Part shown: positions 1-64,000 of the stretch, one piece after another
Layout of the letters: each line of letters opens with the position of its first letter
Position numbering within the stretch: position 1 is the stretch's first letter
Sequence record: NC_041917.1
Direction: 5' to 3' (one strand)
DNA length: 64,000 nucleotides
The notes under the pieces: model-generated
What the model saw: the letters and a program-made list of their open reading frames with translations, nothing else
Databases searched by the model: none
What the model was told of the DNA's origin: nothing
Program-made: the position numbers and the translations under genes

Positions 1-268
1 TATCTTCTCCTGAAGTCGCATAGTACTTCGCACTTTTTGTTCAATCACCTTTTTTCAAAAATGATAACATGAGGTTCAGGAAAATCTCGAAGGTACGTGA
101 AATCAAATACGAATTCTAAAAAATTTGGAGTACCCTCTAGACTTTTGCTGAGATCTCGAAAGTACAAAAAACATATAAGGAAGTGTGAAAATTTTATTGA
201 ATTGAAAAGTACTAAAGTACTATTTTGTACTGTACAAAAACACAGTACAAAAATAATTGAAATAAACC

Positions 269-297
269 TTGACGTGTTACGGGTGCGATGATATGAT
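269..297 (+). promoter_or_regulatory. sigma70-like promoter with no downstream ORF
   Basis: TTGACG(269-274)-17 nt-TATGAT(292-297). Confidence 0.7.
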
Positions 298-303
298 GTA
301 TCC

Positions 304-470
304 AAGATGAAGAACACAGTTAGACACCTCTCTCGTTGACGCTGTATGAATCATCTAGTACTGGTAAATTGCCGAACATGTTGCCGCATGTTATTACTGG
401 TACGAAATGGGAATACCTTATTCCCCTCTCTCTTTCTCGCTATTGTTCAGGAAAGATTTAGTACTGAACG
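304..470 (+). ncRNA. candidate structured ncRNA
   Basis: Follows the promoter; helices 305-310/351-356, 358-367/394-403, 375-380/387-392, 409-415/419-425, 445-450/464-469; no ORF. Confidence 0.4.
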
Positions 471-748
471 TTTGGAAGTAATACTGTACTAATTAGGATA
501 GTACTTTATAATGAGTTCTCATGAAGCACACGCTGGAGAATATATTATAAAGTACTATCCTTTTTTGCATTGTACTATAAGAATAGAAGTACTAATAGAG
601 TACCTTTTGATAGATGGATTTGTTTTGAGGATTGTCTGAATTTTGGGTGTACTATCCCTATCTGCTATCTATAGATGGATAGACTTCTGGCAGTGTAGAT
701 GTATAGATGGTTGAACGTCTAGACAGCTATCCTTCTGGATGGCTAAAT

Positions 749-788
749 GTCTAAACGTCTAGATGGTTATCCCTCTAGACGTTTAGAC
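749..788. repeat. perfect 15-bp inverted repeat
   Basis: GTCTAAACGTCTAGA(749-763)/TCTAGACGTTTAGAC(774-788), 10-nt loop. Confidence 0.95.
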
Positions 789-982
789 GGCTAAACGCTT
801 TTTTGTCTCGATTTTCCATTAGTTCCCCTTCCGCGTCTAGTTAGTACTAGGCAGAATCGAAAGGCGTCTTTTCGTGTTGACAGAGCTATATTATCAAACG
901 GTGATCCATTATGCAAGGACTTTTTTCAATAAAAATAAATTTGACAAGTACAAACCGGATGTAGTACTATAATCACAACAAA

Positions 983-1007
983 GAGAAATTTGTAGCCCAC
1001 AGGGTGC
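983..1007 (+). repeat. promoter-locked element E1
   Basis: GAGAAAT-TTGTAG-CCCACAGGGTGC; promoter TTGACA 941/TACTAT 965-970. Confidence 0.85.
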
Positions 1008-1070
1008 CAAGATCCGCCTATTAGAAATTAAATGCGAATGAGAATCATTACCGATTATAGGTATATCTCC

Positions 1071-1096
1071 GCACCCTCTGGGGTATCCGATTTCTC
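1071..1096 (-). repeat. promoter-locked element E2
   Basis: Minus strand GAGAAAT-CGGAT-ACCCCAGAGGGTGC; minus promoter TTGCAT(1137-1132)-17-TATTAT(1114-1109). Confidence 0.9.
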
Positions 1097-1520
1097 TCGT
1101 CTGAAATAATAATATCAAAGTACGGTATAAGATGCAAGGACTTTTTTCGTTTTTGGTGAAAATAGTTTAGATCGTTGTATACGTATAAAGGAAAGGATTT
1201 AAAAGGCGAACAGGTGGAGCGGGGCGAAGGTATAGCAGTACTATATAAACGCCGTGTAATGGTTCCTATGCGTTATATGGGGGCATGTACACGTATAAAG
1301 GAAAGAAACCCTATAGCAGAACTATTTTTAAAAAGATTGCATAAAGTACTTGCAAAGGTTTACCGGTATGATAATATCTATCTCGTCAACACGACACCGC
1401 TCTTTAACAACTTGCTAGACAATTACTTGATAGTGATTCTTCTCTTTAGAAATAAGGAAAAAGAAAAACAAAAAAGTACTTGACGGCAAGAATGGAAAGT
1501 GTAGAATGTTGGTTATCGAA

Positions 1521-1651
1521 AGGCGGTAAGGTTCGCCGGATGATAGGAAAGGGTAACAGGGCAAAATAAAGTACTGTTGCAGTGTGAAGCCGAAAGTGCT
1601 CACATAGCCTTATAAAAAGCTTACTAACTGTAAGTGACCTATCTACCGCCT
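1521..1651 (+). ncRNA. candidate multibranch ncRNA
   Basis: Promoter TTGACG 1480/TAGAAT 1502; AGGCGGTA 1521-1528 and GATAGG 1542-1547 pair with contiguous CCTATC-TACCGCCT 1638-1651; three internal hairpins. Confidence 0.6.
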
Positions 1652-1785
1652 AACGATGTAACAAAAAAAAGTTTCTAAGAAGTTGAAAAAAGTACTTGAC
1701 GGATAGAAACGAAACGTAGTAATATGTGTTCAAGCCAAACGGCTTACCAAACAAACTAAACTAAACTTTTAAGAGGATTTAAATC

Positions 1786-2448
1786 ATGACTACTACCAAC
1801 AACGCAAAAGCTACCCGTATCACTCTGAACTCTATCGTTTTCGCCAATGCTCCAGTACTGGCAGCGGTTGCCGAAGGTGAACAGCCTCACAGCAAAGAAG
1901 TGATCGCACAGCACAAAACGCAGGTAGCGGAGTTTGTTGCAAATCAGGGTAAAGAACTGGCTGGCTACATTCTCGGCAAAGTTGAAACTCCTGACGTGAT
2001 TCTGGCGATTCTGAAAGAAGCCGCTAAACAGGTTCCAGCAGTACAGAAACAACTGGCAGAAGAAGCCGCGAAAGCCGAAGCCGAAGCCGCAGAACAGCGT
2101 AAAAAAGACGCTGAAGCCGCTGAAGCGAAACGCAAAGCTGATGAAGAAGCACTTCAGGCCGAAAAAGATAAAATGTTGAAAATCCTTACTGATAGCGGTC
2201 TGGATCTGGAAATCGCTCAAACAATGGTCGCCGCTGGCCTGAAAGCAAAAGCACCAGCGAACGCACCGAAAAACAGCTACGAACGTGTAGCGGTAACGGT
2301 GAACGGCAAAGGTTATGATGTTCCAGTACGTGGGAACATGAGCGAAGAACTCAAAGCACTGGTTGCTAAAGACGGCGGGGATCGTGAAGCGTTTATCAAC
2401 AAATACCGCAACGAACCAGCAGCAGCAGAAACCAACACCGCCGAATAA
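1786..2448 (+). CDS. coiled-coil protein with H-NS-like C-terminal half
   Basis: GAGGA SD, own promoter; KMLKILTDSGLD..GLKAKA..VNGKGYDVPVRGNMSEELKALVAKDGGDREAFI parallels H-NS as recalled from memory. Confidence 0.5.
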   Translation: MTTTNNAKATRITLNSIVFANAPVLAAVAEGEQPHSKEVIAQHKTQVAEFVANQGKELAGYILGKVETPDVILAILKEAAKQVPAVQKQLAEEAAKAEAEAAEQRKKDAEAAEAKRKADEEALQAEKDKMLKILTDSGLDLEIAQTMVAAGLKAKAPANAPKNSYERVAVTVNGKGYDVPVRGNMSEELKALVAKDGGDREAFINKYRNEPAAAETNTAE

Positions 2449-2468
2449 TATCACGGCGTAACGCGAAA

Positions 2469-2486
2469 GGGGGCTAACTAGCCCCC
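2469..2486 (+). terminator. GC hairpin after 1786 gene
   Basis: GGGGGC-TAACTA-GCCCCC; weak U-tract. Confidence 0.5.
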
Positions 2487-2578
2487 TAAGCCGTTCTAAC
2501 AGTACTGTAATGCAATCGGTTATAGTACTGTTAAAACGTCTTAGAAACGATCCTACGGCGTTCTACAATACCTTTTAA

Positions 2579-2863
2579 GTGAGAGTAAACGCTATGGAAC
2601 TAAAACCCATTACAGAGTTAATTGATCCTAAGACAAGGATCGCCCGAACGATGAACGCCGTTAGCAGTACTAAACAAGTATATAGCGGCTATCTGGCTTT
2701 TGTTGTAGATGGGAAGATCCTACAACGCAGGATCTATGATATGGCTTATAATAGCCTTTATGATTCCTGTATGTATATAGTACACCAGAAAGTTAACTAT
2801 GCCGTTAATGTATCAGCTAAACCAATTAGCGGGGCGTTTAACGTTGAATCCTTAACTGTATAA
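2579..2863 (+). CDS. hypothetical protein
   Basis: ORF track; start uncertain. Confidence 0.45.
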   Translation: MRVNAMELKPITELIDPKTRIARTMNAVSSTKQVYSGYLAFVVDGKILQRRIYDMAYNSLYDSCMYIVHQKVNYAVNVSAKPISGAFNVESLTV

Positions 2864-2933
2864 AATTTAGTTTTATTCATAAATATTAAAGCCGCATTGA
2901 TTGGCAATGCGGCTTTTTATTATGGATTAAATT

Positions 2934-3350
2934 ATGAGATACAAAAAACCTGAACCTGTACATATTCAAGGAAAATGCGTTATAGATGGATGTGACAATC
3001 TACAGGCAGTAGTTAAGAAAAACAAATACGGGGCAAGATGTAGCAAACATCTTAGGGAATCATGGCAATCTAATGATCCTGAAATTTTCAAGTATCTAAG
3101 CATTAAAAGATTATATGGATTAGAAAAAGAAGACTATATAAAACTACTTGAATCACAAGATTATAAGTGTTACATTTGTGGAACTCATCAAGATGATAGC
3201 AGTAGAGAAGTATTATATGTTGACCATGATCACAGTACTAATAAAATCCGTGGGTTATTATGTCATCATTGTAATACTGGTATAGGAAATTTTAAAGATG
3301 ATCCTGAACTCTTACAACGTGCTATAGACTATTTGAAAAAGAATTCATAA
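2934..3350 (+). CDS. endonuclease VII-family HNH endonuclease
   Basis: CYICG..VDHDH.T.KIRGLLCHHCNTGIGNFKDD signature. Confidence 0.85.
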   Translation: MRYKKPEPVHIQGKCVIDGCDNLQAVVKKNKYGARCSKHLRESWQSNDPEIFKYLSIKRLYGLEKEDYIKLLESQDYKCYICGTHQDDSSREVLYVDHDHSTNKIRGLLCHHCNTGIGNFKDDPELLQRAIDYLKKNS

Positions 3351-3415
3351 AGTACTTGCAATAAGTTTTAAGTACTGTAGAATATCCTATATCGAAACAA
3401 CACGGAGTAAATGAA

Positions 3416-3640
3416 ATGAGATTAAGTAAACTGTTAGCGGAGTTGTCGAAGGTTGCAGAACTTGCGAAAGTACACGGCAACAATGATCCTGATATTTCTT
3501 TTTGGCATGATGAAATTGAAACAATCGAACATTTAGAAGTATCATTCCCGCAAGATCTGGATGATGCCAGAATACCGACTAAAGTACTATCGGAAACTGA
3601 GAAAGGAAACTTTTCATTTAGATTAGTACTACCAGAATAA
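3416..3640 (+). CDS. hypothetical early protein
   Basis: Own promoter, GGAG SD. Confidence 0.75.
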   Translation: MRLSKLLAELSKVAELAKVHGNNDPDISFWHDEIETIEHLEVSFPQDLDDARIPTKVLSETEKGNFSFRLVLPE

Positions 3641-3699
3641 TCTTTACAAAAATGGGGTTGACAGCCAGCCCCAAAAAATGCAATAATACATACAAGCCA

Positions 3700-3725
3700 G
3701 AGAAATGGCGTAACCCACAGGGTGC
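3700..3725 (+). repeat. promoter-locked element E3
   Basis: GAGAAAT-GGCGTA-ACCCACAGGGTGC; TTGACA 3658. Confidence 0.85.
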
Positions 3726-3770
3726 GGAGATCCGTCCGTAGAAAATTCAGTACTTAATAGATATATCTCG

Positions 3771-3796
3771 GCACCCTCTAGGGTATCCGATTTCTC
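3771..3796 (-). repeat. promoter-locked element E4
   Basis: 3771-3800 is 29/30 identical to 1071-1100; minus promoter TTGCTT(3837-3832)-17-CATAAT(3814-3809). Confidence 0.9.
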
Positions 3797-3941
3797 TCGT
3801 ATGTAAGTATTATGCCAGTACTGAGAACATAAAGCAAGGGGTAAACGAAAATAAAAATTAAAATTCAAATGAAAAAGTACTTGCAATAAGTTTTAAGTAC
3901 TGTATACTTACCTTATCGAAACAAATGAAAGGATTTAAGAA

Positions 3942-4334: not shown

Positions 4335-4373
4335 TACTGTATAATCTTTTATATCGAAACGGGAGATATAAAC

Positions 4374-4829: not shown

Positions 4830-4904
4830 TATATTGTCAAAAGTACTTGCATTAAAGTAGCGAGTACTTTACAATAAGTTATCGTTAAGTGAGAGGATAA
4901 AGAA

Positions 4905-5830: not shown

Positions 5831-5902
5831 TTAAAATAGTACTTGCAATAATATGTGAGTACTGTATAATTCTTTATATCGAAAACAAACGAGGATTTTT
5901 AA

Positions 5903-7736: not shown

Positions 7737-7790
7737 CTATATTATCAAAAGTACTTGCAAATAGAAAGCGAGTACTTTATAATGAAGTTA
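7733..7790 (+). promoter_or_regulatory. duplicated early promoter bracketed by two AGTACT sites
   Basis: 58 nt identical to 8362-8419; TTGCAA 7755-17-TATAAT 7778. Confidence 0.9.
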
Positions 7791-8365: not shown

Positions 8366-8455
8366 CTATATTATCAAAAGTACTTGCAAATAGAAAGCGA
8401 GTACTTTATAATGAAGTTATTGAATCGGTACTTATTAACTAAGAGGAAGTATATC

Positions 8456-8659: not shown

Positions 8660-8735
8660 CACATTATCAAAAGTACTTGCAAACAGAAAGCGAGTACTTT
8701 ATAATGGTTACACTATTAAGCGAGAGGATAACAAA

Positions 8736-9040: not shown

Positions 9041-9070
9041 AAGTACTGGTGAAATATCCAGTACTGTTTT
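9041..9070 (+). terminator. intrinsic terminator
   Basis: AGTACTGG-TGAAATAT-CCAGTACT followed by T run. Confidence 0.7.
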
Positions 9071-11563: not shown

Positions 11564-11639
11564 TTATTACCAAAAGTACTTGACAGAAGTTATCGAGTAC
11601 TTTATAATAATCACATCAACCACACAAGAGGCACTAAAA

Positions 11640-12775: not shown

Positions 12776-12841
12776 AAAAAGGGTTGACTTAGGTCAGCCC
12801 TTTTGCTATTGTATCAGTACTTAAACAAAAGGAACAAAATC

Positions 12842-13192: not shown

Positions 13193-13247
13193 TTAAAATA
13201 AAGACTTGACTCGTTCAGGTCTTTTTTTGTATACTATATTCAATCCA

Positions 13248-14197: not shown

Positions 14198-14248
14198 AAA
14201 TAAAGGCTTGACACGTTCAAGCCTTTTTGTTATAGTACTATCACTCCA

Positions 14249-14275: not shown

Positions 14276-14404
14276 AGTACTGTATCTATAATAAAATAAT
14301 TAAAATTTAAATGAAAAAAGTACTTGCATTAAGTTTTAAGTACTGTATAATGTTTTACATAGGGTAAGCAATACCGCTTACCCATATTAAGTGAGAGAAT
14401 CAAA

Positions 14405-16221: not shown

Positions 16222-16276
16222 TTAAAAATAGGGGTTGACGAGAGTCAGCCCTTTTTGCTATAATAATTCCAATGAA

Positions 16277-16678: not shown

Positions 16679-16761
16679 AAATTTAAACGTAAAAAGTACT
16701 TGACTACATCAGTTGAGTACTTTAAAATAGAATCTTAATCAACGCAATAGGAAACGAAATC

Positions 16762-17655: not shown

Positions 17656-17743
17656 TAATTAAGTACTAAAATCATGTAAGGGGTTGACACTTGTCAGCCC
17701 CTTTTGCTATACTTCTTTTACACCAACCGGAAAGGAAAAACAA

Positions 17744-18091: not shown

Positions 18092-18158
18092 TACTAAGGG
18101 GTTGACAATAGTCAGCCCCTTTTGATATACTTCTTTTACACCAACAAAGGAAAGTATT

Positions 18159-19791: not shown

Positions 19792-20007
19792 GCAGTACTA
19801 TGTTATACCCATTTTTATATTAATTCAAAAAATATCTTATACAAAATAAAAGTACTTGACTTTTAAAATGTATAAGGTATTGGTTAACTTTTCTGTATAT
19901 AACGTTGAAGGACTATGCAAATTTTTTTGCTTACTAAAGGCCAGTAATGCTTAGCACCCCTATAATCGGGGTATAGGTATTACTGGCTATACTATTTGGA
20001 GTAAATT

Positions 20008-20577
20008 ATGGAATATGAAAAGATAAAAGAAATGTTTTTAAAAGTTTGGCCTATACTAATTCCACTCATGCCCCCATTAAATCAGTACAGTACTCCTATT
20101 GATAATGAATACTTCGCGGAGTACATAACCTTCTCCCCGAATCATATCTTCAGGATATACGGTAATGGTGGTACTAAGTTATCTGACATACTATTTGAAA
20201 TCAGTTACAATACTGAAACGAAATACTTCAGTACTTTTACTGAGGACACTATACGTATTGCACACTGGAAGAAAGATTTACCTCGTTTCTACGCCCTTCA
20301 TGATCCAGATAACTCTAAGGAGAATGGTCAGGGATATACTTTCATCCAGTACCCATGTGATACTGATTATTTCTTTCAGAGGATGACAGTACAAAATACG
20401 TTAGAATATGAAGAATATGAATTATGGGATACTGAAGTAATGGTTATGCAAGAAGTACTCTCTGATCATCCTGCATTAAGTATAGGTTTAGTACTACGTG
20501 ATGAGTATCTTACACCTGATGATGTAATTAAGATAGGCGTAGAGTTCTTTGAAAAGATGTGGGAAAATAAAAAATGA
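20008..20577 (+). CDS. tandem paralogue 1 (FQxxT family)
   Basis: YPCDTDYFFQRMT. Confidence 0.8.
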   Translation: MEYEKIKEMFLKVWPILIPLMPPLNQYSTPIDNEYFAEYITFSPNHIFRIYGNGGTKLSDILFEISYNTETKYFSTFTEDTIRIAHWKKDLPRFYALHDPDNSKENGQGYTFIQYPCDTDYFFQRMTVQNTLEYEEYELWDTEVMVMQEVLSDHPALSIGLVLRDEYLTPDDVIKIGVEFFEKMWENKK

Positions 20578-21233
20578 TTAAACTTATACAATTCGTTAAT
20601 GTATGTAAGTCATTAATAGAATGGCATAGTTTACGGACTTCCAACACATCCATTGTTATGAATGATGATAGAATACAATTAAGTACTGGTAATGAGTATC
20701 GTGTACTGTCAGGTGAATCTGGAGCTATTGCAACTAGGTTAGAATTTTATCTATCAGAATATAGACAGGATGTTACATTAGTCCGATTATCGAGACATAT
20801 GGATTTACACATAAAATTAAGAGATGATTATTATTTCTTAATGAATGAAGATAATCTTTTACAATTTGGCATACTCAAAGAAACTACTGGAGTATTGAGA
20901 AAGCTTGCTGAGTACCTTCCATTTCTCGATAAAGATACACCGTACAACCATGATACCTTAGAAGCTTTAGAGTTTCAGTACTTGACTAAGTACAGTATTA
21001 ATGAAGTACAAGCAATGATTGTTTATCATTTACTTCGAGAGTACAGGAAAGATTACCCAGCACATACATTAACTTCAAAGTACACTCCATCGTTAGCAAT
21101 TAATTTTAAAGTACTTGAGGAATGCACAGTACAAGAGTTGCTAGAGATGAACAATCATATACGGAATAAAATAGATGAACTTCAACTTCAAGTACTATCC
21201 AAAATTGAAAGAAATATTAAAACTAATGTCTAA
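20574..21233 (+). CDS. tandem paralogue 2
   Basis: LEALEFQYLTKY; ATGA overlap. Confidence 0.8.
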   Translation: MIKLIQFVNVCKSLIEWHSLRTSNTSIVMNDDRIQLSTGNEYRVLSGESGAIATRLEFYLSEYRQDVTLVRLSRHMDLHIKLRDDYYFLMNEDNLLQFGILKETTGVLRKLAEYLPFLDKDTPYNHDTLEALEFQYLTKYSINEVQAMIVYHLLREYRKDYPAHTLTSKYTPSLAINFKVLEECTVQELLEMNNHIRNKIDELQLQVLSKIERNIKTNV

Positions 21234-21774
21234 GTTCAATACTAACATTACGGATGATATAGAGTATCGTGATGATATATTATCAGTAAGATTGGTGAGA
21301 GTACGTGATGATCGTATGACATTTGATATACATGCAATTGGTTTTGATTATAATTATCCAGTACTTATCATGACGTGGTGTTATAATAACGATGTAGATA
21401 TTTTTTCTAGATTTTTCTACAGTACAGATACATTTATAAGTGCAGTTTATAGTACTACTAATATGAGCAAGTTCCATTATGAAGTTAATGAAAGTATTCA
21501 TGTAAAGAAGGTATGCAAGTTGGATTATCCTTTACGGGAAGAACAAGTGTTTCAGGAGTTGACTAGATTTAATTTACCGTCCGAAGAATCAATTACGACA
21601 TTCATGGATACATCTTATGAAGTACTGAATGGTAGTACTAAGTTTAGTTCTTTCTCTTTTCATCCACATAGTTTAGATGCAAAAAATGAAACAGAGATGG
21701 ATAATATGGTACAATCTATATTGGAAAGGTTAGAGAAGTTGTATCTTGAAAATGACGCAATTTTAAAAGACTAA
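21226..21774 (+). CDS. tandem paralogue 3
   Basis: YPLREEQVFQELTRF; start moved to 21226. Confidence 0.8.
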   Translation: MSKFNTNITDDIEYRDDILSVRLVRVRDDRMTFDIHAIGFDYNYPVLIMTWCYNNDVDIFSRFFYSTDTFISAVYSTTNMSKFHYEVNESIHVKKVCKLDYPLREEQVFQELTRFNLPSEESITTFMDTSYEVLNGSTKFSSFSFHPHSLDAKNETEMDNMVQSILERLEKLYLENDAILKD

Positions 21775-21893
21775 ATAAATGTTATCTTAAAAATTGTTGT
21801 ATAAAAAATAGTCAAAAAAATTTCCGCTTCTAATGATTGCTGTCAAGATAAAATGGCGGGGTCGAGGGGGCGTCGGGAGCGTGGGAAGTAATT

Positions 21894-22490
21894 ATGGAAT
21901 CGATGATAGTACTAAAAGATTTTTACGAAAAGTTTGCTGCACCGATAGCTGATGCTGGATTATTGAGTACTGCAAAGAACACCAAGACCTTAGAATGGGG
22001 AGGTCGAGTTAAGGGGTTAAGATATACATTTACCAGTACTGATTCTTATACAAGTGTTAAGTTAGTAGATGAAACTGATTATACCTTTGCATTAGATGCA
22101 GTATGTTATCGTGAACAAAACGGTGCTATCAATGCAACTCGTACATTTTTCACGAGTCCTACATGGACAGAGATATACACTGGTACAGGATTTAGTACTA
22201 CAAAAATTAATGTATGTCACCGAGATGAAAGTGAATTTCGTCGGGACATGAACTATCCGATATTAGAAGAAGAATACTTTCAGAATAGTACTAGGATTGA
22301 ATTAGAAGAAGAATCTTTCTATCAGTACTTCATGGGATTTGAACCAGCAGCTATAGAGTTATGTTTAAAATTCTCCCACGTTGATAATGGTGTAGAGTTA
22401 GCGAGGACAGTGCTAAATGATACTACTTTAATTAATAACATATTAATGCAATTGAATATTCTTATCATGACATATAAGAGACAAAAATGA
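21894..22490 (+). CDS. tandem paralogue 4
   Basis: YPILEEEYFQNSTRI. Confidence 0.8.
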   Translation: MESMIVLKDFYEKFAAPIADAGLLSTAKNTKTLEWGGRVKGLRYTFTSTDSYTSVKLVDETDYTFALDAVCYREQNGAINATRTFFTSPTWTEIYTGTGFSTTKINVCHRDESEFRRDMNYPILEEEYFQNSTRIELEEESFYQYFMGFEPAAIELCLKFSHVDNGVELARTVLNDTTLINNILMQLNILIMTYKRQK

Positions 22491-22999
22491 GTGAGAAGAT
22501 TTATAAACAGGCTAGAAAGTACTGTGATAAGTTTTTAAGATTACACAAAGTACTTTCTGGCGTACATGAGAAAATTAAAAAGAATTCGTGGAGAAATTCA
22601 CCCTTTAGTACTAATCGGTACATGGTAAATCTAGACAATAATAAGACGGGAATTATAATGAAAATGGCTAGGGGAAAATATAATTCTTATGAAGTACATT
22701 ATCATCTAGCACCATATACACACAGAGATTCACAGCGTAGAAATAATTTTTATGTTATTACGGATCATACTAAATTTATACATTGTAGTACTAAAACAGT
22801 TCAAGACTTACGTGATGTATCAGTTTATGATGAATGTTTAGCATTTCAATTAAGTACTGTATATACGGACAGTGAATTATTTGATTATTATTGTTGTTCG
22901 ATGTTACATACTGCGGGTTTTCGTGGAGCGTGTAGGACTAATGTTCATCATAGTACATGGAAAGCTTTATATCTACAAGCTTTAAGTATTGGTGGCTGA
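22487..22999 (+). CDS. tandem paralogue 5
   Basis: YDECLAFQLSTVY. Confidence 0.8.
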   Translation: MSEKIYKQARKYCDKFLRLHKVLSGVHEKIKKNSWRNSPFSTNRYMVNLDNNKTGIIMKMARGKYNSYEVHYHLAPYTHRDSQRRNNFYVITDHTKFIHCSTKTVQDLRDVSVYDECLAFQLSTVYTDSELFDYYCCSMLHTAGFRGACRTNVHHSTWKALYLQALSIGG

Positions 23000-23000
23000 T

Positions 23001-23588
23001 ATGCAAGAGTATAAAATTTTGACAGATATTGCTTCTGAACTATATAAGATTCGGAACAAAACAATAGAATATTCTGTATCTGATGGAATAGCTGCATCTT
23101 TATGGCCTGAGAGGAAGCCATTCACATCGTACACATTTAAAGTAAGTGGTCCATTAGAGACATATACATCTAAGTACTATAAATTTGTATTAAGCAGTAT
23201 GCACCATTCAGAAAACGCAGTTGCTTTTGCGGAGTTATGTACACTTGAGGTTTGTTTTGATACGGCTTGGTATATTAATAGTATCGATCATCACAGGGGT
23301 AGAATATCATTAAACAATGTTAACATGGATGTTTTATCCATATGTCATGATAGTACTGACAATTCTGCTATGATAGTACTTAGAGATGAAGTAATTACAG
23401 AAGAATGGTTATTTCAATTAATGACTAAGTTTGATATTCCATTTTATGAAGACGTATTAGTACTGAACAGTATAAGGACGGATTTATTTAAATTTCCATA
23501 TAATGTTAGTTTTTGTATAAGGTATTCAAAAGAACATTTACAGAATTTTTTGTTTAAGATTAAGGATTTTTTACATGACCAGAGCTGA
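23001..23588 (+). CDS. tandem paralogue 6
   Basis: ITEEWLFQLMTKF. Confidence 0.8.
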   Translation: MQEYKILTDIASELYKIRNKTIEYSVSDGIAASLWPERKPFTSYTFKVSGPLETYTSKYYKFVLSSMHHSENAVAFAELCTLEVCFDTAWYINSIDHHRGRISLNNVNMDVLSICHDSTDNSAMIVLRDEVITEEWLFQLMTKFDIPFYEDVLVLNSIRTDLFKFPYNVSFCIRYSKEHLQNFLFKIKDFLHDQS

Positions 23589-24144
23589 ATTAATTCAGAG
23601 TAGTACTATGTATCGTCTTCTTGGTGCTTATAAAATCTTCAAAGAGAAGGAAAAAAAGTACAAGGGGAAGTTATATAATTTTACTTTATATGATTACAAC
23701 GATAGTGGTTATGATTTAGAATGTTCGCATCATGGATTATATATTTGGCCTAATGGTGAAGACAGAGATGATAATCAAATCTTTAGTATTGAATACTTGA
23801 AAGATGACCAATGGTGGGTTCAATCATTATTGAATGACTATGAGTTTTCTATTACTCCACGCGAGGCAGTTGAAATCAATGTTGGTGATCATTTAGACCT
23901 TGACAAAAGCAACCTATATGTGTATAATCATCAGGATGAAGAAGAATTATTTGAGGAATATCCAGAAGAATGGTTTTTTCAACAACTGACCGTACAGGAC
24001 ATAATTCCTTTTGAACAATTTAAAGAAGAAGTTAAGTTCTGTAAGAAAATACTTTCTCACGGTATAGATGAGTATGATAGAATCTTTATCTTTAATTTAG
24101 AGAAATTTAATATCAATCTGTTAGAAGGGTTTAAGGAAATATGA
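23575..24144 (+). CDS. tandem paralogue 7
   Basis: YPEEWFFQQLTVQD. Confidence 0.8.
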   Translation: MTRAELIQSSTMYRLLGAYKIFKEKEKKYKGKLYNFTLYDYNDSGYDLECSHHGLYIWPNGEDRDDNQIFSIEYLKDDQWWVQSLLNDYEFSITPREAVEINVGDHLDLDKSNLYVYNHQDEEELFEEYPEEWFFQQLTVQDIIPFEQFKEEVKFCKKILSHGIDEYDRIFIFNLEKFNINLLEGFKEI

Positions 24145-24569
24145 TAGTTTTCCATGCTAGTACTGTTCAGATTACAAACTTTTACATTCCTTACGGTGGA
24201 TTACATTTAGGTGGTATGCACAGTGCTTTGGAATGTGCCTTACGGAAGGTCTATACAGGCCGTGAAGCTGGTATTGATGTGGATACGGTGTACATTCACC
24301 GTTGTTTTCTTAAAGCACTGAAGCCGTTTGAGGCTGATGATATGGGAAGTGATGCATCATGGAAGCGATTAAATCAGACATTAATAGCTACTGCTACAGA
24401 TTTCGATTGTATTAAATATACGAACAAGTACGAGGTTGACGTTGTTCCATCCTATTGTTTATTTGATGCGAGTTTAGTTGAAATCCTTGATTGTAGTACT
24501 ATGCATATGGATATGGCAGAAGATATATTACATGGGACATACACAGATGACTACCGGTACGAGTACTAA
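24141..24569 (+). CDS. ADP-ribosyltransferase-like (ART-PolyVal-like) protein
   Basis: VFHAS..GLHLG..DCIKYTNKYE..SYCLFD pattern. Confidence 0.6.
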   Translation: MIVFHASTVQITNFYIPYGGLHLGGMHSALECALRKVYTGREAGIDVDTVYIHRCFLKALKPFEADDMGSDASWKRLNQTLIATATDFDCIKYTNKYEVDVVPSYCLFDASLVEILDCSTMHMDMAEDILHGTYTDDYRYEY

Positions 24570-25122
24570 AGAAGTACTTTTAGATAAAGAGTTTCGAATT
24601 TCAATGAAGATGTTTGATTTCATGAAGAAGATAAATTTAATATTCATGAATGATTATAAAAATGAATTAGAAACTTCACACAGTATTAGTGTTGGTGATG
24701 ATACAAGTTATACGCTAAAAATGATCAAAGATAAGGCATTTTACATTACCAGAACACGCTCAGAATTTTATTCACAAATATTATTACATGTTGAATATGA
24801 ATCGTATTATACTGGAAGAAACTATTTTGGAGCAGGAAGAACGTACTTACATTTTTCACCACTATTGAATAGTGATTGTATAGTACAAGATAGTGCTTAT
24901 ATTTTGAAGTACCCATATGATTTTGATGAGGCGGCACATTTTCAGGCAATGACACAAAATCATATAACTATTGAAGAAAATTACATGTACGCATCTGAAT
25001 TAATGAAAGCAGTACATTCAGATTCATTTATTTGGGCTGAAATAGTTACTTCTGAAATTGAAGAAGATGAGTACGAGTATTTTGAGAAATTGATAAAATA
25101 TTTCAGGGATTCGATATGCTAA
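24547..25122 (+). CDS. tandem paralogue 8
   Basis: YPYDFDEAAHFQAMTQN; start moved to 24547. Confidence 0.8.
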   Translation: MTTGTSTKEVLLDKEFRISMKMFDFMKKINLIFMNDYKNELETSHSISVGDDTSYTLKMIKDKAFYITRTRSEFYSQILLHVEYESYYTGRNYFGAGRTYLHFSPLLNSDCIVQDSAYILKYPYDFDEAAHFQAMTQNHITIEENYMYASELMKAVHSDSFIWAEIVTSEIEEDEYEYFEKLIKYFRDSIC

Positions 25123-25562
25123 ACATAATTGAAAACATTGATCCAATTAATTACATCATTCAGGATGTATTAAATAACATCAATGGATTAGAGTTAACTC
25201 CACGTAATAATTTTTATATTGGTGAAGGATACTCACTTGACATACAAGAAGTTCGTAAGAATTCGTATAAGTTAAAAGTACGAACAAATAATTTACAAGA
25301 TTTATGTAATATTGCGTTTGATAAGAAGAATCTTATTATTCGTTACAGTCCTGAGTTTTTCTTTGTACAAGAAGGTGCAGCGTTAAGCACGAACTTGTTT
25401 GAGGGACTGTTTAGTTTAGAGGAACTACCTAATGCGTTCAGGAATAATAGTACTGTATTCGGATTAGGTGTAGAATTTGATCATGCTACAATGATGGAAA
25501 CCATTGAACTGTGCCGTAGAATTCGTGATGATTTCTTGCGGAAAATTGCTACGCAAAAATAA
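25116..25562 (+). CDS. probable tandem paralogue 9
   Basis: LEELPNAFRNNSTVF, a degenerate motif. Confidence 0.65.
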   Translation: MLNIIENIDPINYIIQDVLNNINGLELTPRNNFYIGEGYSLDIQEVRKNSYKLKVRTNNLQDLCNIAFDKKNLIIRYSPEFFFVQEGAALSTNLFEGLFSLEELPNAFRNNSTVFGLGVEFDHATMMETIELCRRIRDDFLRKIATQK

Positions 25563-25642
25563 AAGACACTCATGGATGAGTTATAAATACTTTTAGAGCA
25601 CTAAAAGATGTGCTAAAAATACAAGTTCAAGGGAGTGAACAC

Positions 25643-26122
25643 ATGAATAATCTTATTCAAAAAGACAGCGGGCCGATTGATGATGTGATCACTCAAGACG
25701 CTTTTGAAGTACATGGACTAATGTTTAATATTAAAGATATTGTGCAATGTCTGTTTTTGTGCAGTGCAACTATGCATGAATTTTTTAATAACCCAATGTG
25801 TAATTGTTTTGCTGTTACTATTAACAGTAATGATAAATGGGTTATGGCTACACCCATGACAATGAATACTGAATTCAATGAATGTGTAATGCGTAACAAC
25901 AAAGAAAAAACTCCACAATCTGAAGTAGAAAAACTACGTAACACGTATACTAAACCTGATGAGAAACACATACTTATGTTTTTATCGAAGGGATATGTTA
26001 TGGATAATTTTACTGTACAAGAGAGTTATCATGATTTTCTCTTTACAGAAGGTGAACCACATGTTATGATTACTGCGGAAGACATTGAGAGTCTAACATT
26101 AAAAAATCCTTACTTGGAGTAA
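25643..26122 (+). CDS. hypothetical protein
   Basis: GGGAG SD; start moved to 25643. Confidence 0.75.
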   Translation: MNNLIQKDSGPIDDVITQDAFEVHGLMFNIKDIVQCLFLCSATMHEFFNNPMCNCFAVTINSNDKWVMATPMTMNTEFNECVMRNNKEKTPQSEVEKLRNTYTKPDEKHILMFLSKGYVMDNFTVQESYHDFLFTEGEPHVMITAEDIESLTLKNPYLE

Positions 26123-43065: not shown

Positions 43066-43066
43066 T

Positions 43067-43318: not shown

Positions 43319-44094
43319 GTCATGTAAAAGTTCTGGATATTCCAGATGAAAAAAATGTTTACATCATTGGTGATATTCACGGTAATTTTGATTTATTTCA
43401 AAAAACGCTGCACGAAATAGGAATCACCGATGATGATGTACTAATTAGCGTTGGTGACCTAGTTGATAGAGGTCGCAATAATGCAAAAATGTTATTTGAG
43501 TTTTTGAATAAAGAAAATAGACATATGGTACTTGGAAATCACGAAGATATGATGATGCGTGGGCGTACTAGTAGAGAATGGTATTTCAACTGGTTGCAAA
43601 ACGGTGGACAAACAACACTAGATGAAATTGGTGCACCAGGTATCGACCATTTCTGTACTTTATTAGAAGATGTTCCACATTTAATTGAAGTAAACCATCG
43701 TGGATATAAATTAGGTATTGCACATGCGGGAATACCACATTATCCAAGTATTAATGATTGGGAAACTATTAAACAATGGACTGAAGATAATGGTGAATAT
43801 CGTTATCAACTTCTATGGGATCGTGATGCAATTCAAATGGCAAGATATGATTTTGAACTTTCTGAAAAAGAAAAATTAGAACGTATCGTGGCTGGGGTTG
43901 ATTATGTAATTCATGGTCATACTGGTGTTCCACACAAATTTGCTTTTGGTAATCGTGTGTGGATTGATACTCAATTCCGTAGTGGTCAATTTACTATTGC
44001 AACAATGGACGATGATCATCTGATGAAGTACTATACTATAGTTCCAGATGAATGGGGTTCAGATGTTGGTTATGAAATAAGGGAAACAAAATAA
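43315..44094 (+). CDS. Ser/Thr protein phosphatase (calcineurin-like, lambda-PP type)
   Basis: GDIHG, GDLVDRG, LGNHE, HGHT. Confidence 0.9.
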   Translation: MSHVKVLDIPDEKNVYIIGDIHGNFDLFQKTLHEIGITDDDVLISVGDLVDRGRNNAKMLFEFLNKENRHMVLGNHEDMMMRGRTSREWYFNWLQNGGQTTLDEIGAPGIDHFCTLLEDVPHLIEVNHRGYKLGIAHAGIPHYPSINDWETIKQWTEDNGEYRYQLLWDRDAIQMARYDFELSEKEKLERIVAGVDYVIHGHTGVPHKFAFGNRVWIDTQFRSGQFTIATMDDDHLMKYYTIVPDEWGSDVGYEIRETK

Positions 44095-44576
44095 TGCGTT
44101 TATACAGTATCACAAATATGTATACCGATGGAATTCATGCAGGTATTCAAACACAGCATAGTACAGTAAGACTATTTGTAAAATATGACAAATCTAGAGG
44201 TGATTATTTCCCACAAGAAGATATGTTATATGATTGGGCATATGATCATGAAACTACTGTAGTACTAAATGGTGGTATGCATGATTCACTTATGGAAGTA
44301 CTAAATCAATTGCAAGAATGGGAACGCCATAATGCAAATGAAGTACTACCATTTGCTCCATTTTTTGAACCAGGTATTAATAATGCATTAACTAGTATCA
44401 GTATTATTATGCCACAAGATGCAATTGATTTTATGTCTGAAATTCGTGCAAAGAAACCACGAAATGATATTATGACTCCAGAGTATACAGAGTTGTATCA
44501 TAATATTCATGTAGCTTACGGGCGTCATGCATTTAAACTATTTGAACTAGTTGCATTCCTACCACTTGCAAAATAA
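44094..44576 (+). CDS. PTH2-like (peptidyl-tRNA hydrolase 2 fold) protein
   Basis: GIHAGIQTQH..W..TTVVLNGG..FFEPGINNALTSI. Confidence 0.5.
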   Translation: MRLYSITNMYTDGIHAGIQTQHSTVRLFVKYDKSRGDYFPQEDMLYDWAYDHETTVVLNGGMHDSLMEVLNQLQEWERHNANEVLPFAPFFEPGINNALTSISIIMPQDAIDFMSEIRAKKPRNDIMTPEYTELYHNIHVAYGRHAFKLFELVAFLPLAK

Positions 44577-59919: not shown

Positions 59920-59991
59920 TGGTATTTTAGAGTATTAAATACTATTAGTTAATACAAAGTGTTATGCACACAAACTATAAAAAGGATGTTT

Positions 59992-61446: not shown

Positions 61447-61493
61447 TATTGTTGGGGATACTTATGTATCCCCGTTTTATTAAGGAAGAATAT

Positions 61494-61928
61494 ATGGAAA
61501 TATATCTATCAGGAATAGTATTGAAATTAAATGAACCAAATCATAATGGTAGAATTTATTCACAGAAAGAAGTTTCAAAAAATATTAGTAATTTGCAAAC
61601 TGATATATTAAGCGGGTCATTGCTTTCTGAAATTGATCCACTTGAGAGAACTACAACTATTAATTTAGATAATGTTGGTGGTTTAGTTGCACGATTAGAA
61701 ATTGTAAATGATAACTTAGAAAGTACTGTTCAAATATTACCAACGGTTAGAGGCCAGCAGCTTATTAGAATGTTGGAAGGTAATGGTGAAGTATTTTTAA
61801 GTTCTCGCGGTACTGGTCAAATTGATAGTGATGGAAATGTTACTAATTATGAATTAATTACAGTTGATATTTTACCATTCCACCTATGCGACGACCCCGA
61901 TAAAATTTGCAAAGTGATAGTGAAATAA
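61494..61928 (+). CDS. T4 gp21-like prohead protease homologue
   Basis: NHNGRIYS, ILPTVRG, LSSRGTG, YELITVD. Confidence 0.7.
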   Translation: MEIYLSGIVLKLNEPNHNGRIYSQKEVSKNISNLQTDILSGSLLSEIDPLERTTTINLDNVGGLVARLEIVNDNLESTVQILPTVRGQQLIRMLEGNGEVFLSSRGTGQIDSDGNVTNYELITVDILPFHLCDDPDKICKVIVK

Positions 61929-61988
61929 TTGAAACAGCAGTGAAAATTGTGGTATAATGTACCCATAACAAAAGAGAAGGAAACGAAG

Positions 61989-62243
61989 ATGGCTAAGCAA
62001 AACGATAAAGATGTAAAAAGTACCCGCAAAGAACTTATGTACAAAAACGAGCAGCTTGAGAATCTATTAGAGCTACGCCGCAAGGGTATTCTAACCCGTC
62101 AGCAGTTCCGTCTATTGACCTTTGATAAAGGTCTACAGGGCAGCACCAAGGGTTCTCCACTAATCGAAGTGTTCGAGTTGGAGAAACAAGGAAAGGGTAA
62201 ACCAGTCCTTGTCCAAAAAGTTCGTCAATGGACTCGCACTTAA
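61989..62243 (+). CDS. basic hypothetical protein
   Basis: Own promoter, AAGGA SD. Confidence 0.75.
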   Translation: MAKQNDKDVKSTRKELMYKNEQLENLLELRRKGILTRQQFRLLTFDKGLQGSTKGSPLIEVFELEKQGKGKPVLVQKVRQWTRT

Positions 62244-62371
62244 TTTCTGGCCTGTTTTGATATAAACAACATAAATAAGTTTACAATAATAAAAATATTT
62301 TTGACTCCATGTTGTTTATATTACATTCTTTTAAGGCCACGCAATGTGGCCTTTTTTATTGGAAAAATAAA

Positions 62372-63097
62372 ATGATTAACAAAGAAGAAGTAAGTAAAGC
62401 AGCAAGAGAAATTGTTCATCACATTATTCTAGATAATATCTATGGATATTTCGAAGAATTAGGTACACCAAATATTGTTGTGTACGGTTCATTCATCGAA
62501 ATGACTTCTGGTTTTGATGTGAAGCCAAATGATATTGATGTTACGATTGTACTTGATGGGGAGTTACCTGAACCACGTCATAAATCATTCTATTTAAACT
62601 TTGTTGAACTACCCATTAATGTAGAGTATATGAGTCGTGAATCATTTCAAAAAGAATTGCATTCATTTCAACCAAAATACTTTATGTGCACAGCTACTCC
62701 TGAACTAAGTGAAGAAATTGATTCTGTATGGAAGAATAAAGAAATTCACGAAGTACGTTCTGGTATAAGTTCAGTAACTTCCAAAGCCTTTGATAAAGGT
62801 CGTAAAAAACTACTAGTTGAAGATGACTATGATGAAGTACTAGGATTAAAAAATATCTATCATGCGTTTAAGTTTCCAATTTATGCTAAATGGTATTTCT
62901 ATCCAGAATTGGCTGAACGTGATTATATTACAGACATTCAGTACTTGAATGAGATTCATAAAGGAATTTATGAGGCTTACAATAATAGTACTGGCACATT
63001 AGAAGAACGTTGTGCGGCGGTTGTACAATTTGCTAAACCACATCATTTATCATTGATGACTGGCTTCCGCATACTATTTCCTAAAAAGGTAGAATAA
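62372..63097 (+). CDS. nucleotidyltransferase-domain protein
   Basis: VYGSF..NDIDV motif. Confidence 0.65.
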   Translation: MINKEEVSKAAREIVHHIILDNIYGYFEELGTPNIVVYGSFIEMTSGFDVKPNDIDVTIVLDGELPEPRHKSFYLNFVELPINVEYMSRESFQKELHSFQPKYFMCTATPELSEEIDSVWKNKEIHEVRSGISSVTSKAFDKGRKKLLVEDDYDEVLGLKNIYHAFKFPIYAKWYFYPELAERDYITDIQYLNEIHKGIYEAYNNSTGTLEERCAAVVQFAKPHHLSLMTGFRILFPKKVE

Positions 63098-63309
63098 TGA
63101 TAGTGTTTATAATTATTGGAATGGTTTTATTATTTCTATTTGGCCTCGCTGCTATTATTGGAAGTGTTATTATTCCAATGTATGTATGTGCATGGACAGG
63201 AAAAGTATCAAAGGGTGAGATTGCAATCAGTATTATAATGTTTGTAATTGGTGCATTTTCATGGTACTATGTGTTTTCTCATATGAGTCTCAACATAGGT
63301 ATTAGTTAA
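63097..63309 (+). CDS. membrane protein
   Basis: Hydrophobic segments. Confidence 0.7.
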   Translation: MIVFIIIGMVLLFLFGLAAIIGSVIIPMYVCAWTGKVSKGEIAISIIMFVIGAFSWYYVFSHMSLNIGIS

Positions 63310-63523
63310 TGGGTGAAATTATTTTTGCATTAATTGAATGTTTAGTTGAATTAATGTGTATGGGTGCAGCAGGATTTTGGATTGTTATGTGTATTTTAGC
63401 AATTGCTGCTGTTGCTGGTTTTGGTTATTGGGCATATATTTGTTAAGGAATTAAAATGATATTACTTATAAAAGGGCGAATGACTTTCCGATTATGAATT
63501 TTTAATCATAATAAGGAGGACAT

Positions 63524-64000
63524 ATGTTCTTTAAGCAAAAATTTAAAATCTGCTATGATAATGGCAATTTCGTAGAAGTTGATGATTTATTAGGATATAT
63601 TGGTTACACTTACGGTGCAGCCGAAGCATTCTACCAAAGAATGAAATTCACTGTTAAAATTGATAAAAGTAGCTTCTGGTCATATTCTCATTCAAGTATG
63701 AATGATTTGGTTGAAACATTTTACTTATTCACTGAAAACAATATCATGATTTCTCCTGAATTGTTTAAAGGTGAGTACTTAAAATATCGTAATCTAGAAA
63801 CTCAAATTTGGCACAGAAATCGTTTATATTCAATGAAACAATGGCGTCATTTCAATTATCGTCGCAGTCATACGACTACCTATGATCGTCGTATGGAAAC
63901 TATCGCAGAACGCCGAGCTATTGCTGGTGTTGTGAAAGAAGAAGGTGAACCAGAATTTCGTGGTCGCCGCCGTTGTATTCCTAATCCGTGGGATGATATA
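63524..64000 (+). CDS. conserved phage protein, truncated by window end
   Basis: AAGGAGG SD; open to the end; RGRRRCIPNPWDD. Confidence 0.7.
   Translation, partial: MFFKQKFKICYDNGNFVEVDDLLGYIGYTYGAAEAFYQRMKFTVKIDKSSFWSYSHSSMNDLVETFYLFTENNIMISPELFKGEYLKYRNLETQIWHRNRLYSMKQWRHFNYRRSHTTTYDRRMETIAERRAIAGVVKEEGEPEFRGRRRCIPNPWDDI

Follow-up and report, generated by a model that had tools for sequence, protein, structure and literature searches.

AGTACT, a selected palindromic word in the DNA of Serratia phage BF and RaK2-like jumbo phages, recurs at fixed positions in early promoters

Abundance of the word in phage BF and its relatives

The tetranucleotide GTAC, and above all the palindrome AGTACT built around it, is strongly over-represented in Serratia phage BF, a 357-kb RaK2-like jumbo myovirus, where selection appears to act on the DNA word rather than on codons or peptides. 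The window, that is, the whole 64,000-nucleotide stretch analysed here (bases 1-64000 of the phage; GC content 34.7%), contains 646 GTAC sites (1..64000), against about 201 expected at zero order and 388 under a maximal-order Markov model (ratio 1.66). In 286 of these sites the preferred flanks A...T complete the hexamer AGTACT, for which 100 dinucleotide-preserving shuffles gave 17.9 ± 3.6 copies and a maximum of 27. AGTACT is the most over-represented hexamer of the window; GTAC ranks third among tetranucleotides by Markov ratio, after the rare CGCC and CCGC, and is by a wide margin the most enriched one in codon shuffles. The excess of AGTACT amounts to about 13-fold over chance, above the tenfold level that marks palindromes of the highly iterated (HIP) type. 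Hand counts in the initial annotation (18 GTAC in 1-603 and 9 in 20001-20600) proved exact, and its expectation of roughly 2 per 600 nt is close to the recomputed value of about 1.9. The enrichment continues beyond the window, with 1251 GTAC (472 expected) and 512 AGTACT (50.5 expected) in the first 150 kb of the genome, from which about 2,700 GTAC and 1,100 AGTACT are extrapolated for the whole.

Such an excess is unexpected, since avoidance of short palindromes is a well-known trait of phage genomes. The avoidance that the initial annotation had noted for phages in general is extreme in BF: 28 of the 64 six-base palindromes are completely absent, as is GCGC, which occurs about 7 times per kb in E. 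coli. Restriction-site avoidance likewise represents genome-wide selection on short palindromes, but AGTACT has the opposite sign. The surprise is greater because the word is clade-wide in 350-kb phages, bends protein sequences and is wired into early promoters. Every RaK2-like relative sampled shows the enrichment (17 of 17 ligase loci, Kaldavass, EJP2 and RaK2), with 428 GTAC against 174 expected in Kaldavass, whereas T4 (0.49x), Felix O1 (0.74x) and E. coli (0.71x) do not. The density of AGTACT in the phage is about 57-fold that in sampled E. coli DNA, and RsaI/ScaI fingerprints combined with AGTACT density would offer a simple metagenome signature for the clade. No mention of the excess was found in the papers examined on the clade (RaK2, CBB, Kaldavass, Sharanji, fENko-Kae01 and a comparative survey of jumbo phages).

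Selection on DNA rather than on codons

The initial annotation had suggested selection on the DNA motif and had named disappearance of the enrichment under a codon-preserving shuffle as a refuting outcome; in the 120 annotated coding sequences it did not disappear (z = 17-41). Coding GTAC numbers 538, versus 332 ± 12 after synonymous-codon shuffling (z = 17) and 232 ± 14 after codon-order shuffling (z = 21), and coding AGTACT numbers 208, versus 54 ± 6 (z = 25) and 21 ± 4.5 (z = 41), respectively. GTAC is enriched in all three codon phases, is denser in intergenic (12.4/kb) than in coding DNA (9.7/kb), and reaches 72 copies against 27 expected even in intergenic DNA without promoter boxes; like HIP-type words, it thus occurs within genes in every frame and also outside them, more often than codon usage would produce. 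Only two genes of at least 400 nt have an observed/expected GTAC ratio below 1, and because nearly every gene is enriched, repeats or paralogues are not behind the effect.

Codon choice depends on context in the direction of the word. The valine codon GTA is used at 64.7% before C versus 42.3% before other bases (p = 8e-13), the tyrosine codon TAC at 55.9% following a G-ending codon versus 23.7% otherwise (p = 6e-18), and AGT-ACT encodes 79 of 121 Ser-Thr pairs, where 18.8 would be expected. Dipeptide frequencies are shifted as well, at 1.79x for ST versus 1.02x for the reversed TS and 1.66x for VL versus 0.94x for LV. The sites are also conserved: when AGTACT was compared with same-phase neighbouring hexamers in three relatives, its retention was 0.69 versus 0.36 in the first (p = 7e-7), 0.58 versus 0.25 in the second (p = 4e-7) and 0.53 versus 0.24 in the third (p = 1e-5), about twice that of the matched hexamers, as in a HIP-like element. 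In more distant relatives the conservation of individual sites fades while density stays. Context-dependent codon choice, shifted dipeptides and conserved sites together bear out the claim that the DNA word itself is selected.

Shape and spacing of the motif

The motif has GTAC as its core, flanked preferentially by A...T and, more weakly, by C...G further out. Base frequencies around GTAC (position -2: A.36, C.25, G.13, T.26; position +5: T.35, G.27, C.07, A.31) are mirror-symmetric despite a strand-skewed base composition. The word is also sharply defined, as the 12 one-mismatch neighbours at its inner four positions lie at 0.76-1.61x expectation, including the transition products AGTATT (1.03x) and AATACT (1.10x), and only the NGTACN variants are enriched (1.0-2.8x). 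Among near neighbours, AGTTCT, AGAACT and TGTACA are at most about 1.5-fold enriched, TGTACA not at all. GTAC sites are placed independently, in a roughly Poisson manner with a mean spacing of 99 bp, and neither helical phasing, nor an exclusion zone between sites, nor periodicity at lags up to 300 bp was found.

Several known kinds of word do not match this shape. A Chi-like asymmetric, orientation-biased word is rejected by the palindrome and its mirror-symmetric flanks, and a very-short-patch-repair-type product by its deamination/mismatch-product neighbours, which are not depleted (0.76-1.61x). Primases use trinucleotide sites such as GTT/GCT in T4 and the GTC type in T7; a corresponding GTA site is excluded here because only GTAC is enriched, GTAA, GTAG and GTAT being no more frequent than expected. 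The host nucleoid-occlusion factor SlmA binds a 12-bp site with an AGTACT core, in whose consensus a G lies directly 5' of AGTACT within outer GT...AC; in the phage, G at this position is depleted (0.13 versus 0.20 background) and no preference for T or G is seen further outward, so a SlmA-binding site was likewise rejected.

Early promoters and non-coding arrays

Ten early promoters in the window share a double-box layout in which one AGTACT abuts the -35 hexamer and a second copy lies 1 nt upstream of the -10, the two boxes being about 21 bp apart and bracketing both elements. All are on the plus strand. The sigma70-type promoter at 3351..3383 is representative, with AGTAC-TTGCAA at the -35, and the others lie at 3876..3908, 4842..4875, 5838..5870 (TTGCAA-16-TATAAT), 7750..7783 (TTGCAA-17-TATAAT), 8379..8412, 8672..8705, 11575..11608 (perfect hexamers, TTGACA-17-TATAAT), 14319..14351 and 16695..16728. 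About ten further early promoters in the window carry the -35-side box only, among them 1475..1507 (plus strand; TTGACG-16-TAGAAT) and those with boxes at 1345, 1691, 5590, 6924, 10896, 15674, 18720, 19519 and 19851; a few have the -10-side box only. An otherwise diverged contig (L126) contains nine promoters with the same double-box layout, and the boxes are absent from the TTGAAAC-type promoter class. The palindrome thus occupies fixed positions overlapping the core elements of one promoter class, as an operator would, and the resulting consensus should help the annotation and engineering of RaK2-like phages. The upstream AAAAAGTAC also fits the generic proximal UP-element consensus, so that the host RNA polymerase by itself might account for this box, and part of the box pattern could stem from shared ancestry of a duplicated promoter cassette.

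Nowhere in the window is GTAC denser than in a left-end non-coding array with 19 copies in 660 bp (1..660), and AGTACT arrays also occur in the homologous non-coding region of RaK2 (L034). A hairpin at 9042..9065, with arms AGTACTGG and CCAGTACT, contains self-complementary copies of the word able to pair with each other. The promoter boxes were also scored as stem.

A proposed protein reader of the word

Our leading, still tentative, reading is that AGTACT is a selected recognition word for a putative two-fold-symmetric DNA-binding protein, serving both as a self label and as an early-promoter operator. We infer that a protein specific to the clade, either phage-encoded or delivered with the virion, reads the word on double-stranded DNA. 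At a density about 57-fold that of E. coli DNA, AGTACT would therefore serve as a sequence-encoded label that concentrates its reader on phage DNA. At the double-box promoters the same reader may act as an operator-binding regulator, most simply in the shut-off or timing of early transcription. Each of the thousands of copies would confer a small independent benefit, and therefore density would be conserved while positions turn over slowly. Such a putative sequence-specific reader would probably be central to DNA handling or early-transcription timing.

The initial annotation had suggested a site for a phage DNA-organising or packaging protein. Its protein-site part is currently the favoured reading, given the palindromic form of the word, its sharp definition and its fixed place in early promoters; a binder did not emerge, and about 15 proteins scanned against Pfam (early, virion-annotated or other candidates, of 580 genes) revealed no DNA-binding domain. 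The dense left-end non-coding array hints faintly at packaging. A protein binding about 2,700 GTAC and 1,100 AGTACT sites on every replicating copy would need to be very abundant, and binding within genes could block transcription, which counts against a binder.

A broader and more doubtful proposal is that, in this T4-related jumbo clade without base hypermodification, chemical marking has been replaced by sequence-encoded identity in the form of a two-word code for self and non-self. Thousands of AGTACT copies would let phage proteins find, regulate or protect phage DNA, and as GCGC is common in the host and absent from the phage, a phage nuclease could destroy host DNA safely.

Alternative explanations

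It is less likely that AGTACT, instead of being bound by a regulator, is processed by a symmetric phage DNA enzyme. It might be a preferred cleavage site of a T4-type topoisomerase II (A|GTAC|T agrees with a 4-bp stagger and symmetric preferences at -1/+5), a site of transient nicking or recombination initiation, or a priming site; at high density it would let a 357-kb genome replicate, decatenate or recombine faster. Symmetry, sharpness, Poisson-like independent placement and a per-site benefit are more in keeping with a catalytic reader than with a binder acting stoichiometrically. Topoisomerase II, ligase and several nucleases are encoded by the clade, and the non-coding end regions that hold the dense arrays are possibly origins. 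However, T4, with the same topoisomerase family, is depleted in GTAC, a trinucleotide primase site is excluded, and the fixed positions at -35 and -10 are not accounted for by any of these enzymes. The Kaldavass nanopore study reported no nicks at the word, though nicks were detected in another phage (PMC11780129).

Less probable again is the self-mark of the initial annotation, in which GTAC/AGTACT is a target of DNA methylation or hypermodification and more sites would put a protective or self-identifying mark on more of the genome. A palindrome with a 4-6 bp core is typical of type II methyltransferase sites, and a GTAC-rich genome would be highly exposed to RsaI- or ScaI-type host enzymes unless protected. 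BF encodes several methyltransferases, and the RaK2 authors reported unusual restriction resistance (data not shown; PMC3622015); the lack of 28 of the 64 palindromic sites accounts for this resistance just as well. What chiefly weakens this reading is that Kaldavass shares the enrichment, yet native-versus-amplified nanopore sequencing found modification only at GATC, CCWGG and TGCAT, not at GTAC, a result from one relative and one method; its three predicted methyltransferases match the three modified motifs (PMC11780129). The three methyltransferases examined in the first 100 kb of BF offer a parallel, comprising a Dam-family N6-adenine enzyme (gp063, PF05869; 31476..32015, plus strand), an N6/N4-family enzyme (gp151) and the unclassified gp129, which has no significant Pfam match. 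Among them no GTAC-specific enzyme could be identified, and gp063 is more likely a GATC enzyme than a GTAC marker. In addition, AGTACT carries no footprint of deamination or very-short-patch repair, and BF has thymidylate synthase and dCMP deaminases with no hydroxymethylase annotated.

A functionless neutral drive, through context-specific mutation bias, biased mismatch repair or the spread of repeats, is very unlikely. Oligonucleotide frequencies are known to be distorted by biased repair, as when CCWGG becomes over-abundant in E. coli through very-short-patch repair, and group 2.2 jumbo phages have an additional, unusual split polymerase of the Pol III-like type (PMC7824862). Against this stand one-mismatch neighbours at expectation, conservation above matched neighbours, dipeptides bent toward the word, an 8-bp mirror-symmetric context implausible from a mutational process, fixed promoter positions and, for repeats, enrichment in nearly all genes.

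Least probable is a selected physical property with no protein reader, either a flexible TA hinge for bending in promoters and capsid or self-complementarity by which copies pair in mRNA or single-stranded DNA: promoter DNA is bent where the boxes sit, copies form the hairpin arms and the stem-scored promoter boxes noted above, and AGTACT may be among the few palindromes that host restriction does not counter-select, but the mechanically similar AGTTCT, AGAACT and TGTACA are scarcely enriched, helical phasing is lacking, T4 and Felix O1 package DNA without the word, and the promoter boxes, lying upstream of the transcription start, are not in RNA.

Comparison with known systems

The closest analogue is HIP1 (GCGATCGC), the cyanobacterial highly iterated palindrome, which is more than tenfold over-represented genome-wide, within genes in all frames and between them, is conserved between related genomes beyond background, and is kept by selection rather than neutrally replenished, its reader and function being unsettled (PMC5861425, PMC4390886). 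AGTACT shares this excess, distribution and conservation between relatives, and is likewise neither a peptide nor an RNA motif. Unlike HIP1, it is 6 bp long, AT-rich, found in a virulent phage clade rather than a cellular phylum, and built into a fixed position in a promoter class. Orphan methyltransferases methylate HIP1 (PMC4390886), which lends some support to a modification target, whereas the single relative assayed showed no modification at GTAC. HIP1 shows periodicity at 10-90 kb; the BF word was examined at lags up to 300 bp only. AGTACT offers a tractable phage counterpart to a 30-year-old puzzle.

In T-even self-marking, glucosyl-hydroxymethylcytosine is read by Alc and endonucleases II and IV. 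The present case resembles it in a T4-related lineage whose proteins would distinguish phage from host DNA, but the proposed label is a sequence word rather than a modified base, and its role as a label is putative. The clade lacks hydroxymethylase and glucosyltransferase genes (PMC3622015, PMC5259590).

The proposed reader, as an abundant genome binder that also regulates early promoters, would resemble SPO1 TF1 and phi29 p6. These abundant proteins bind stoichiometrically, coating the phage genome and repressing early promoters; TF1 recognizes phage DNA via hmU, a self feature. They recognize a modified base or bendability, not a defined palindrome such as AGTACT, and no homologue was identified in BF. 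Chi (GCTGGTGG) and the uptake sequences DUS/USS are likewise dense short words kept by many small selective effects, but they are asymmetric, orientation-dependent and about ten times sparser. Chi is separately enriched in BF.

Abundance and boundaries of AGTACT

The window spans bases 1-64000 of Serratia phage BF (NC_041917/KY630187; genus Eneladusvirus; genome 357,154 bp), a RaK2-like "group 2.2" jumbo myovirus with a distant relationship to T4. The window has a GC content of 34.7% and 120 annotated genes, nearly all on the plus strand and the majority hypothetical, and Rfam and tRNA scans detected no Rfam families or tRNAs in it. The GTAC excess that the initial annotation had derived from hand counts is well founded: recounting gave exact agreement, and the 646 GTAC copies in the window exceed both the 201 expected from base composition and the 388 expected under a maximal-order Markov model. 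The palindrome AGTACT is the most over-represented hexamer of the window: it has 286 copies, where dinucleotide-preserving shuffles give 17.9 ± 3.6. The base before GTAC is A in 65% of copies and the base after it is T in 59%, the outer flanks favour C on the 5' side and G on the 3' side, and these frequencies are mirror images of each other despite the compositional skew of the strand. A single substitution at any of the inner four positions of AGTACT gives hexamers that occur at 0.76-1.61 times expectation; of the 18 single-substitution variants, only those altered at an outer position (NGTACN) remain enriched, at 1.0-2.8 times.

GTAC is evenly spread along the window (11-30 per 2 kb), with approximately exponential spacing (mean 99 bp, CV 0.90). 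Over 150 kb of BF, pair correlation is close to 1 at every lag from 4 to 300 bp, apart from the codon period and a 21 bp spike caused by promoters; neither helical phasing nor arrays nor exclusion zones of the word were found in the spacing or in pair correlations up to 300 bp. On a larger scale, GTAC density declines from 10.8 per kb in the early-gene region (1-50 kb) to 7.6 (50-100 kb) and 6.6 (100-150 kb, where many structural genes lie), a trend that may reflect protein constraint or a stronger requirement for the word among the early genes. Of the eight genes of the window richest in GTAC, five (observed/expected 5-6.3) lie at 20008-25562, where about ten genes follow one another in tandem, encode products of 140-220 aa and in several cases have overlapping starts and stops; they look like a tandem gene family.

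The initial annotation had remarked that phages usually avoid short palindromes, and BF does so to an extreme degree. In its first 150 kb, 28 of the 64 six-base palindromes do not occur even once, including AT-rich ones with about 50 copies expected each, while other palindromes are near expectation; AGTACT is therefore the single large exception under very strong palindrome counter-selection, the opposite of restriction-site avoidance. GCGC is likewise missing (0 vs 130 expected). In 50 kb of Kaldavass, 27 of the same 28 hexamers are absent and GCGC is again lacking (0 vs 69 expected), as it is from EJP2 and all 17 DNA-ligase loci of related phages, compared with approximately 6.8 per kb in E. 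coli. Such all-or-nothing loss, uniform across hosts, suggests either a very broad restriction history or a phage-encoded nuclease that attacks these sites in host DNA. A separate excess concerns the E. coli Chi octamer GCTGGTGG, with nine copies and six of its complement in BF 1-150 kb (0.57 and 0.29 expected), and CTGGTG, over-represented 5.6-fold in the window; these may represent another word used in interaction with the host, or may follow from a preference for CTG-GTG and GGT codons.

Selection on the DNA word and conservation of its sites

Shuffling synonymous codons within genes did not abolish the enrichment: coding sequences contain 538 GTAC against 332 ± 12 after this shuffle and 232 ± 14 after shuffling codon order, and the corresponding values for AGTACT are 208 against 54 ± 6 and 21 ± 4.5. 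GTAC is enriched in all three codon phases. Selection on the DNA motif, as the initial annotation had suspected from disfavoured codon pairs, is evident in codon choice, which the neighbouring codon sets as the word requires. Valine is encoded by GTA in 64.7% of cases before C and in 42.3% otherwise; for tyrosine, the minor codon TAC is used in 55.9% of cases after a codon ending in G, up from 23.7%; and AGT-ACT encodes 79 of 121 Ser-Thr pairs (18.8 expected). Protein sequences themselves are bent toward the word, with the dipeptides ST and VL at 1.8 and 1.7 times expectation and their reversals TS and LV at 1.0 and 0.9. These conditional codon tests, together with the two shuffles, rule out a codon-usage artefact. 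Paralogues or repeats are ruled out as a cause because almost every gene is enriched, with just two exceptions among those of 400 nt or longer. GTAC is denser in intergenic than in coding DNA, and intergenic GTAC remains at 2.65 times expectation after removal of promoter boxes. An RNA-level motif is disfavoured by the mirror symmetry of the word, by the position of promoter boxes upstream of transcription starts and by its enrichment in non-coding DNA.

Individual sites are also retained. In aligned orthologous DNA, with same-phase hexamers within 45 nt as controls, AGTACT is kept about twice as often as its matched neighbours in Yen9-04 (0.69 vs 0.36, p = 7e-7), CBB (0.58 vs 0.25, p = 4e-7) and GAP32 (0.53 vs 0.24, p = 1e-5). 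More divergent relatives show a smaller edge (0.37 vs 0.23 and 0.25 vs 0.21) with density maintained. Identity per base is 0.85 within AGTACT and 0.79 in the background, and differences per site are bimodal, sites being either intact or several changes off, a pattern consistent with the word being selected as a unit and freed from constraint after its loss. Selection on HIP1, the highly iterated palindrome of cyanobacteria, was inferred by the same argument (PMC5861425). Very probably AGTACT is some kind of recognition element under selection at the level of DNA.

Distribution across phages

All 17 DNA-ligase loci (62-100% protein identity), a set that includes CBB, GAP32 and Yen9-04, are enriched for GTAC (2.2-2.9 times) and AGTACT (5-11 times), as are Kaldavass, EJP2 and a RaK2 fragment. 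A tail-sheath search clearly set this clade (72 records) apart from other T4-like phages. Outside it, GTAC stands at 0.49 times expectation in T4 and 0.74 in Felix O1, which also purges palindromes yet lacks GTAC enrichment, ruling out a host-driven effect general to enterobacterial phages. A ligase-profile search for distant relatives found one (27% identity), on a contig without enrichment (GTAC 0.48 times). In 50 kb sampled from E. coli K-12, GTAC is at 0.71 times expectation and AGTACT occurs at 0.06 per kb versus 3.4 in BF, a density about 57 times higher in phage than in host DNA. Since enrichment extends across the clade and is missing from the outside samples, it is an old, lineage-specific phage property and not host-imposed.

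Two viral contigs with clustered AGTACT, L041 and L061, the strongest non-clade examples examined among the IMG/VR matches listed, proved to be artefacts of GGT-ACT coding repeats. Long collagen-like Gly-X-Y repeat genes thus mimic GTAC enrichment in these unrelated contigs and constitute a trap for motif-density screens.

Early promoters and the left end

The first 20 kb contain approximately 21 intergenic sigma70-type promoters with one common consensus, in which an A-tract precedes an AGTAC that merges into the -35 hexamer (TTGCAA or TTGACA) and a second AGTACT box lies one base upstream of the -10 hexamer TATAAT. The two boxes are 20-21 bp apart, start to start; ten promoters have both and the remainder one, and these boxes make up some 40 of the window's 286 copies of AGTACT. 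The other promoter class of the window (TTGAAAC ... TATAAT) is without boxes. Nine two-box promoters of the BF layout occur in contig L126, though the contig has next to nothing else in common with the BF regions compared. No description of the enrichment or of the two-box promoter was found in the papers on RaK2, CBB, Kaldavass, Sharanji and fENko-Kae01 or in a jumbo-phage survey.

A conserved leader (TATCGAAA ... GAGG; 3383-3416, and for example 5870-5900 and 14351-14400) lies downstream of most early promoters, so that promoter and leader, about 70 bp in all, behave as one repeated cassette. Fused terminator-promoter modules lie at 12777-12804, 13200-13235, 14202-14236, 16230-16264, 17684-17713 and 18102-18131, with the TTGAC -35 element in the stem or loop of a GC-rich hairpin and the -10 hexamer after the T-run, an arrangement recalling the promoter-early stem-loops of T4-type phages. 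The left-end non-coding DNA holds an array of the word, 660 bp there containing 19 GTAC, and the homologous non-coding region of RaK2 has AGTACT arrays too. Iteron-like repeats with units TCTAGAC and GATGG occupy 669-790 and 1030-1052, and blocks common to the RaK2 region include GATTTTCCATTAGT and GAGAATCATT-type repeats. This repeat region, for which no Rfam match was found, may be an origin, packaging site or terminus element.

Possible roles of the word

Because the word is mirror-symmetric, sharply bounded, independently placed, conserved, lineage-specific and operator-like in one promoter class, a putative clade-specific homodimeric protein that binds double-stranded DNA and reads (c)AGTACT(g) is proposed. 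The approximately 57-fold density over host DNA would partition such a reader onto the phage genome, and the same protein would regulate early promoters, in the simplest case by shutting off early genes. This combination of self-partitioning and early-promoter regulation is put forward tentatively. It is weakened by the failure of domain searches to find a binder, by the very high abundance that so many sites would require of the protein, and by the resemblance of the upstream promoter box to a generic UP element. The proposed self-label role would be equivalent to that of glucosyl-hydroxymethylcytosine in T4, achieved through sequence rather than chemistry. HIP1 is the closest analogue, sharing over-representation, occurrence in all frames and site conservation; Chi and uptake sequences are asymmetric, and AGTACT works unlike them.

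AGTACT could instead be a site at which a symmetric enzyme such as topoisomerase II processes the DNA, or one used in nicking or recombination, which we regard as unlikely. A primase GTA site was rejected, and host SlmA sites were ruled out by the base composition of the word's flanks.

Somewhat less likely still is that GTAC/AGTACT is a modification target, the methylation or hypermodification mark first suggested for it. Kaldavass shares the enrichment, yet its modified motifs, from native versus amplified nanopore sequencing, are GATC, CCWGG and TGCAT and do not include GTAC; the phage has three predicted methyltransferases (PMC11780129). Three methyltransferases of BF were examined: gp063 (Dam-family, in the window), gp151 (N6/N4-family) and gp129, which had no significant family match in Pfam and NCBIfam scans. 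Few enzymes were reported to cut RaK2 DNA (PMC3622015), a resistance equally well accounted for by missing sites. Modification is accordingly rated as unlikely.

A neutral drive is improbable: no depletion was seen for any of the 18 neighbours of AGTACT, the transition products AGTATT and AATACT among them. A footprint of the deamination or very-short-patch-repair type is thus lacking, and biased repair of that kind is ruled out. A purely physical or self-pairing property of the word is marginally more improbable again.

Pfam and NCBIfam searches of the methyltransferases and some 15 early, virion-annotated or otherwise candidate proteins did not find a reader of the word. Two annotations drew attention in their own right. 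The product of gp213 (BF 124325-125665; 24325-25665 of BF segment L139), annotated as an HNH endonuclease, matches DUF2201 metallopeptidase and VWA-like domains and not HNH, so that the annotation looks wrong; by its domains it is probably a peptidase-vWA partner of the adjacent ATPase. The product of gp164 (BF 94016-94459; 44016-44459 of BF segment L002), a "starvation-inducible transcriptional regulator", matches DUF5856 with a weak ferritin/Dps-like match and may be a phage Dps-like DNA-protecting protein.
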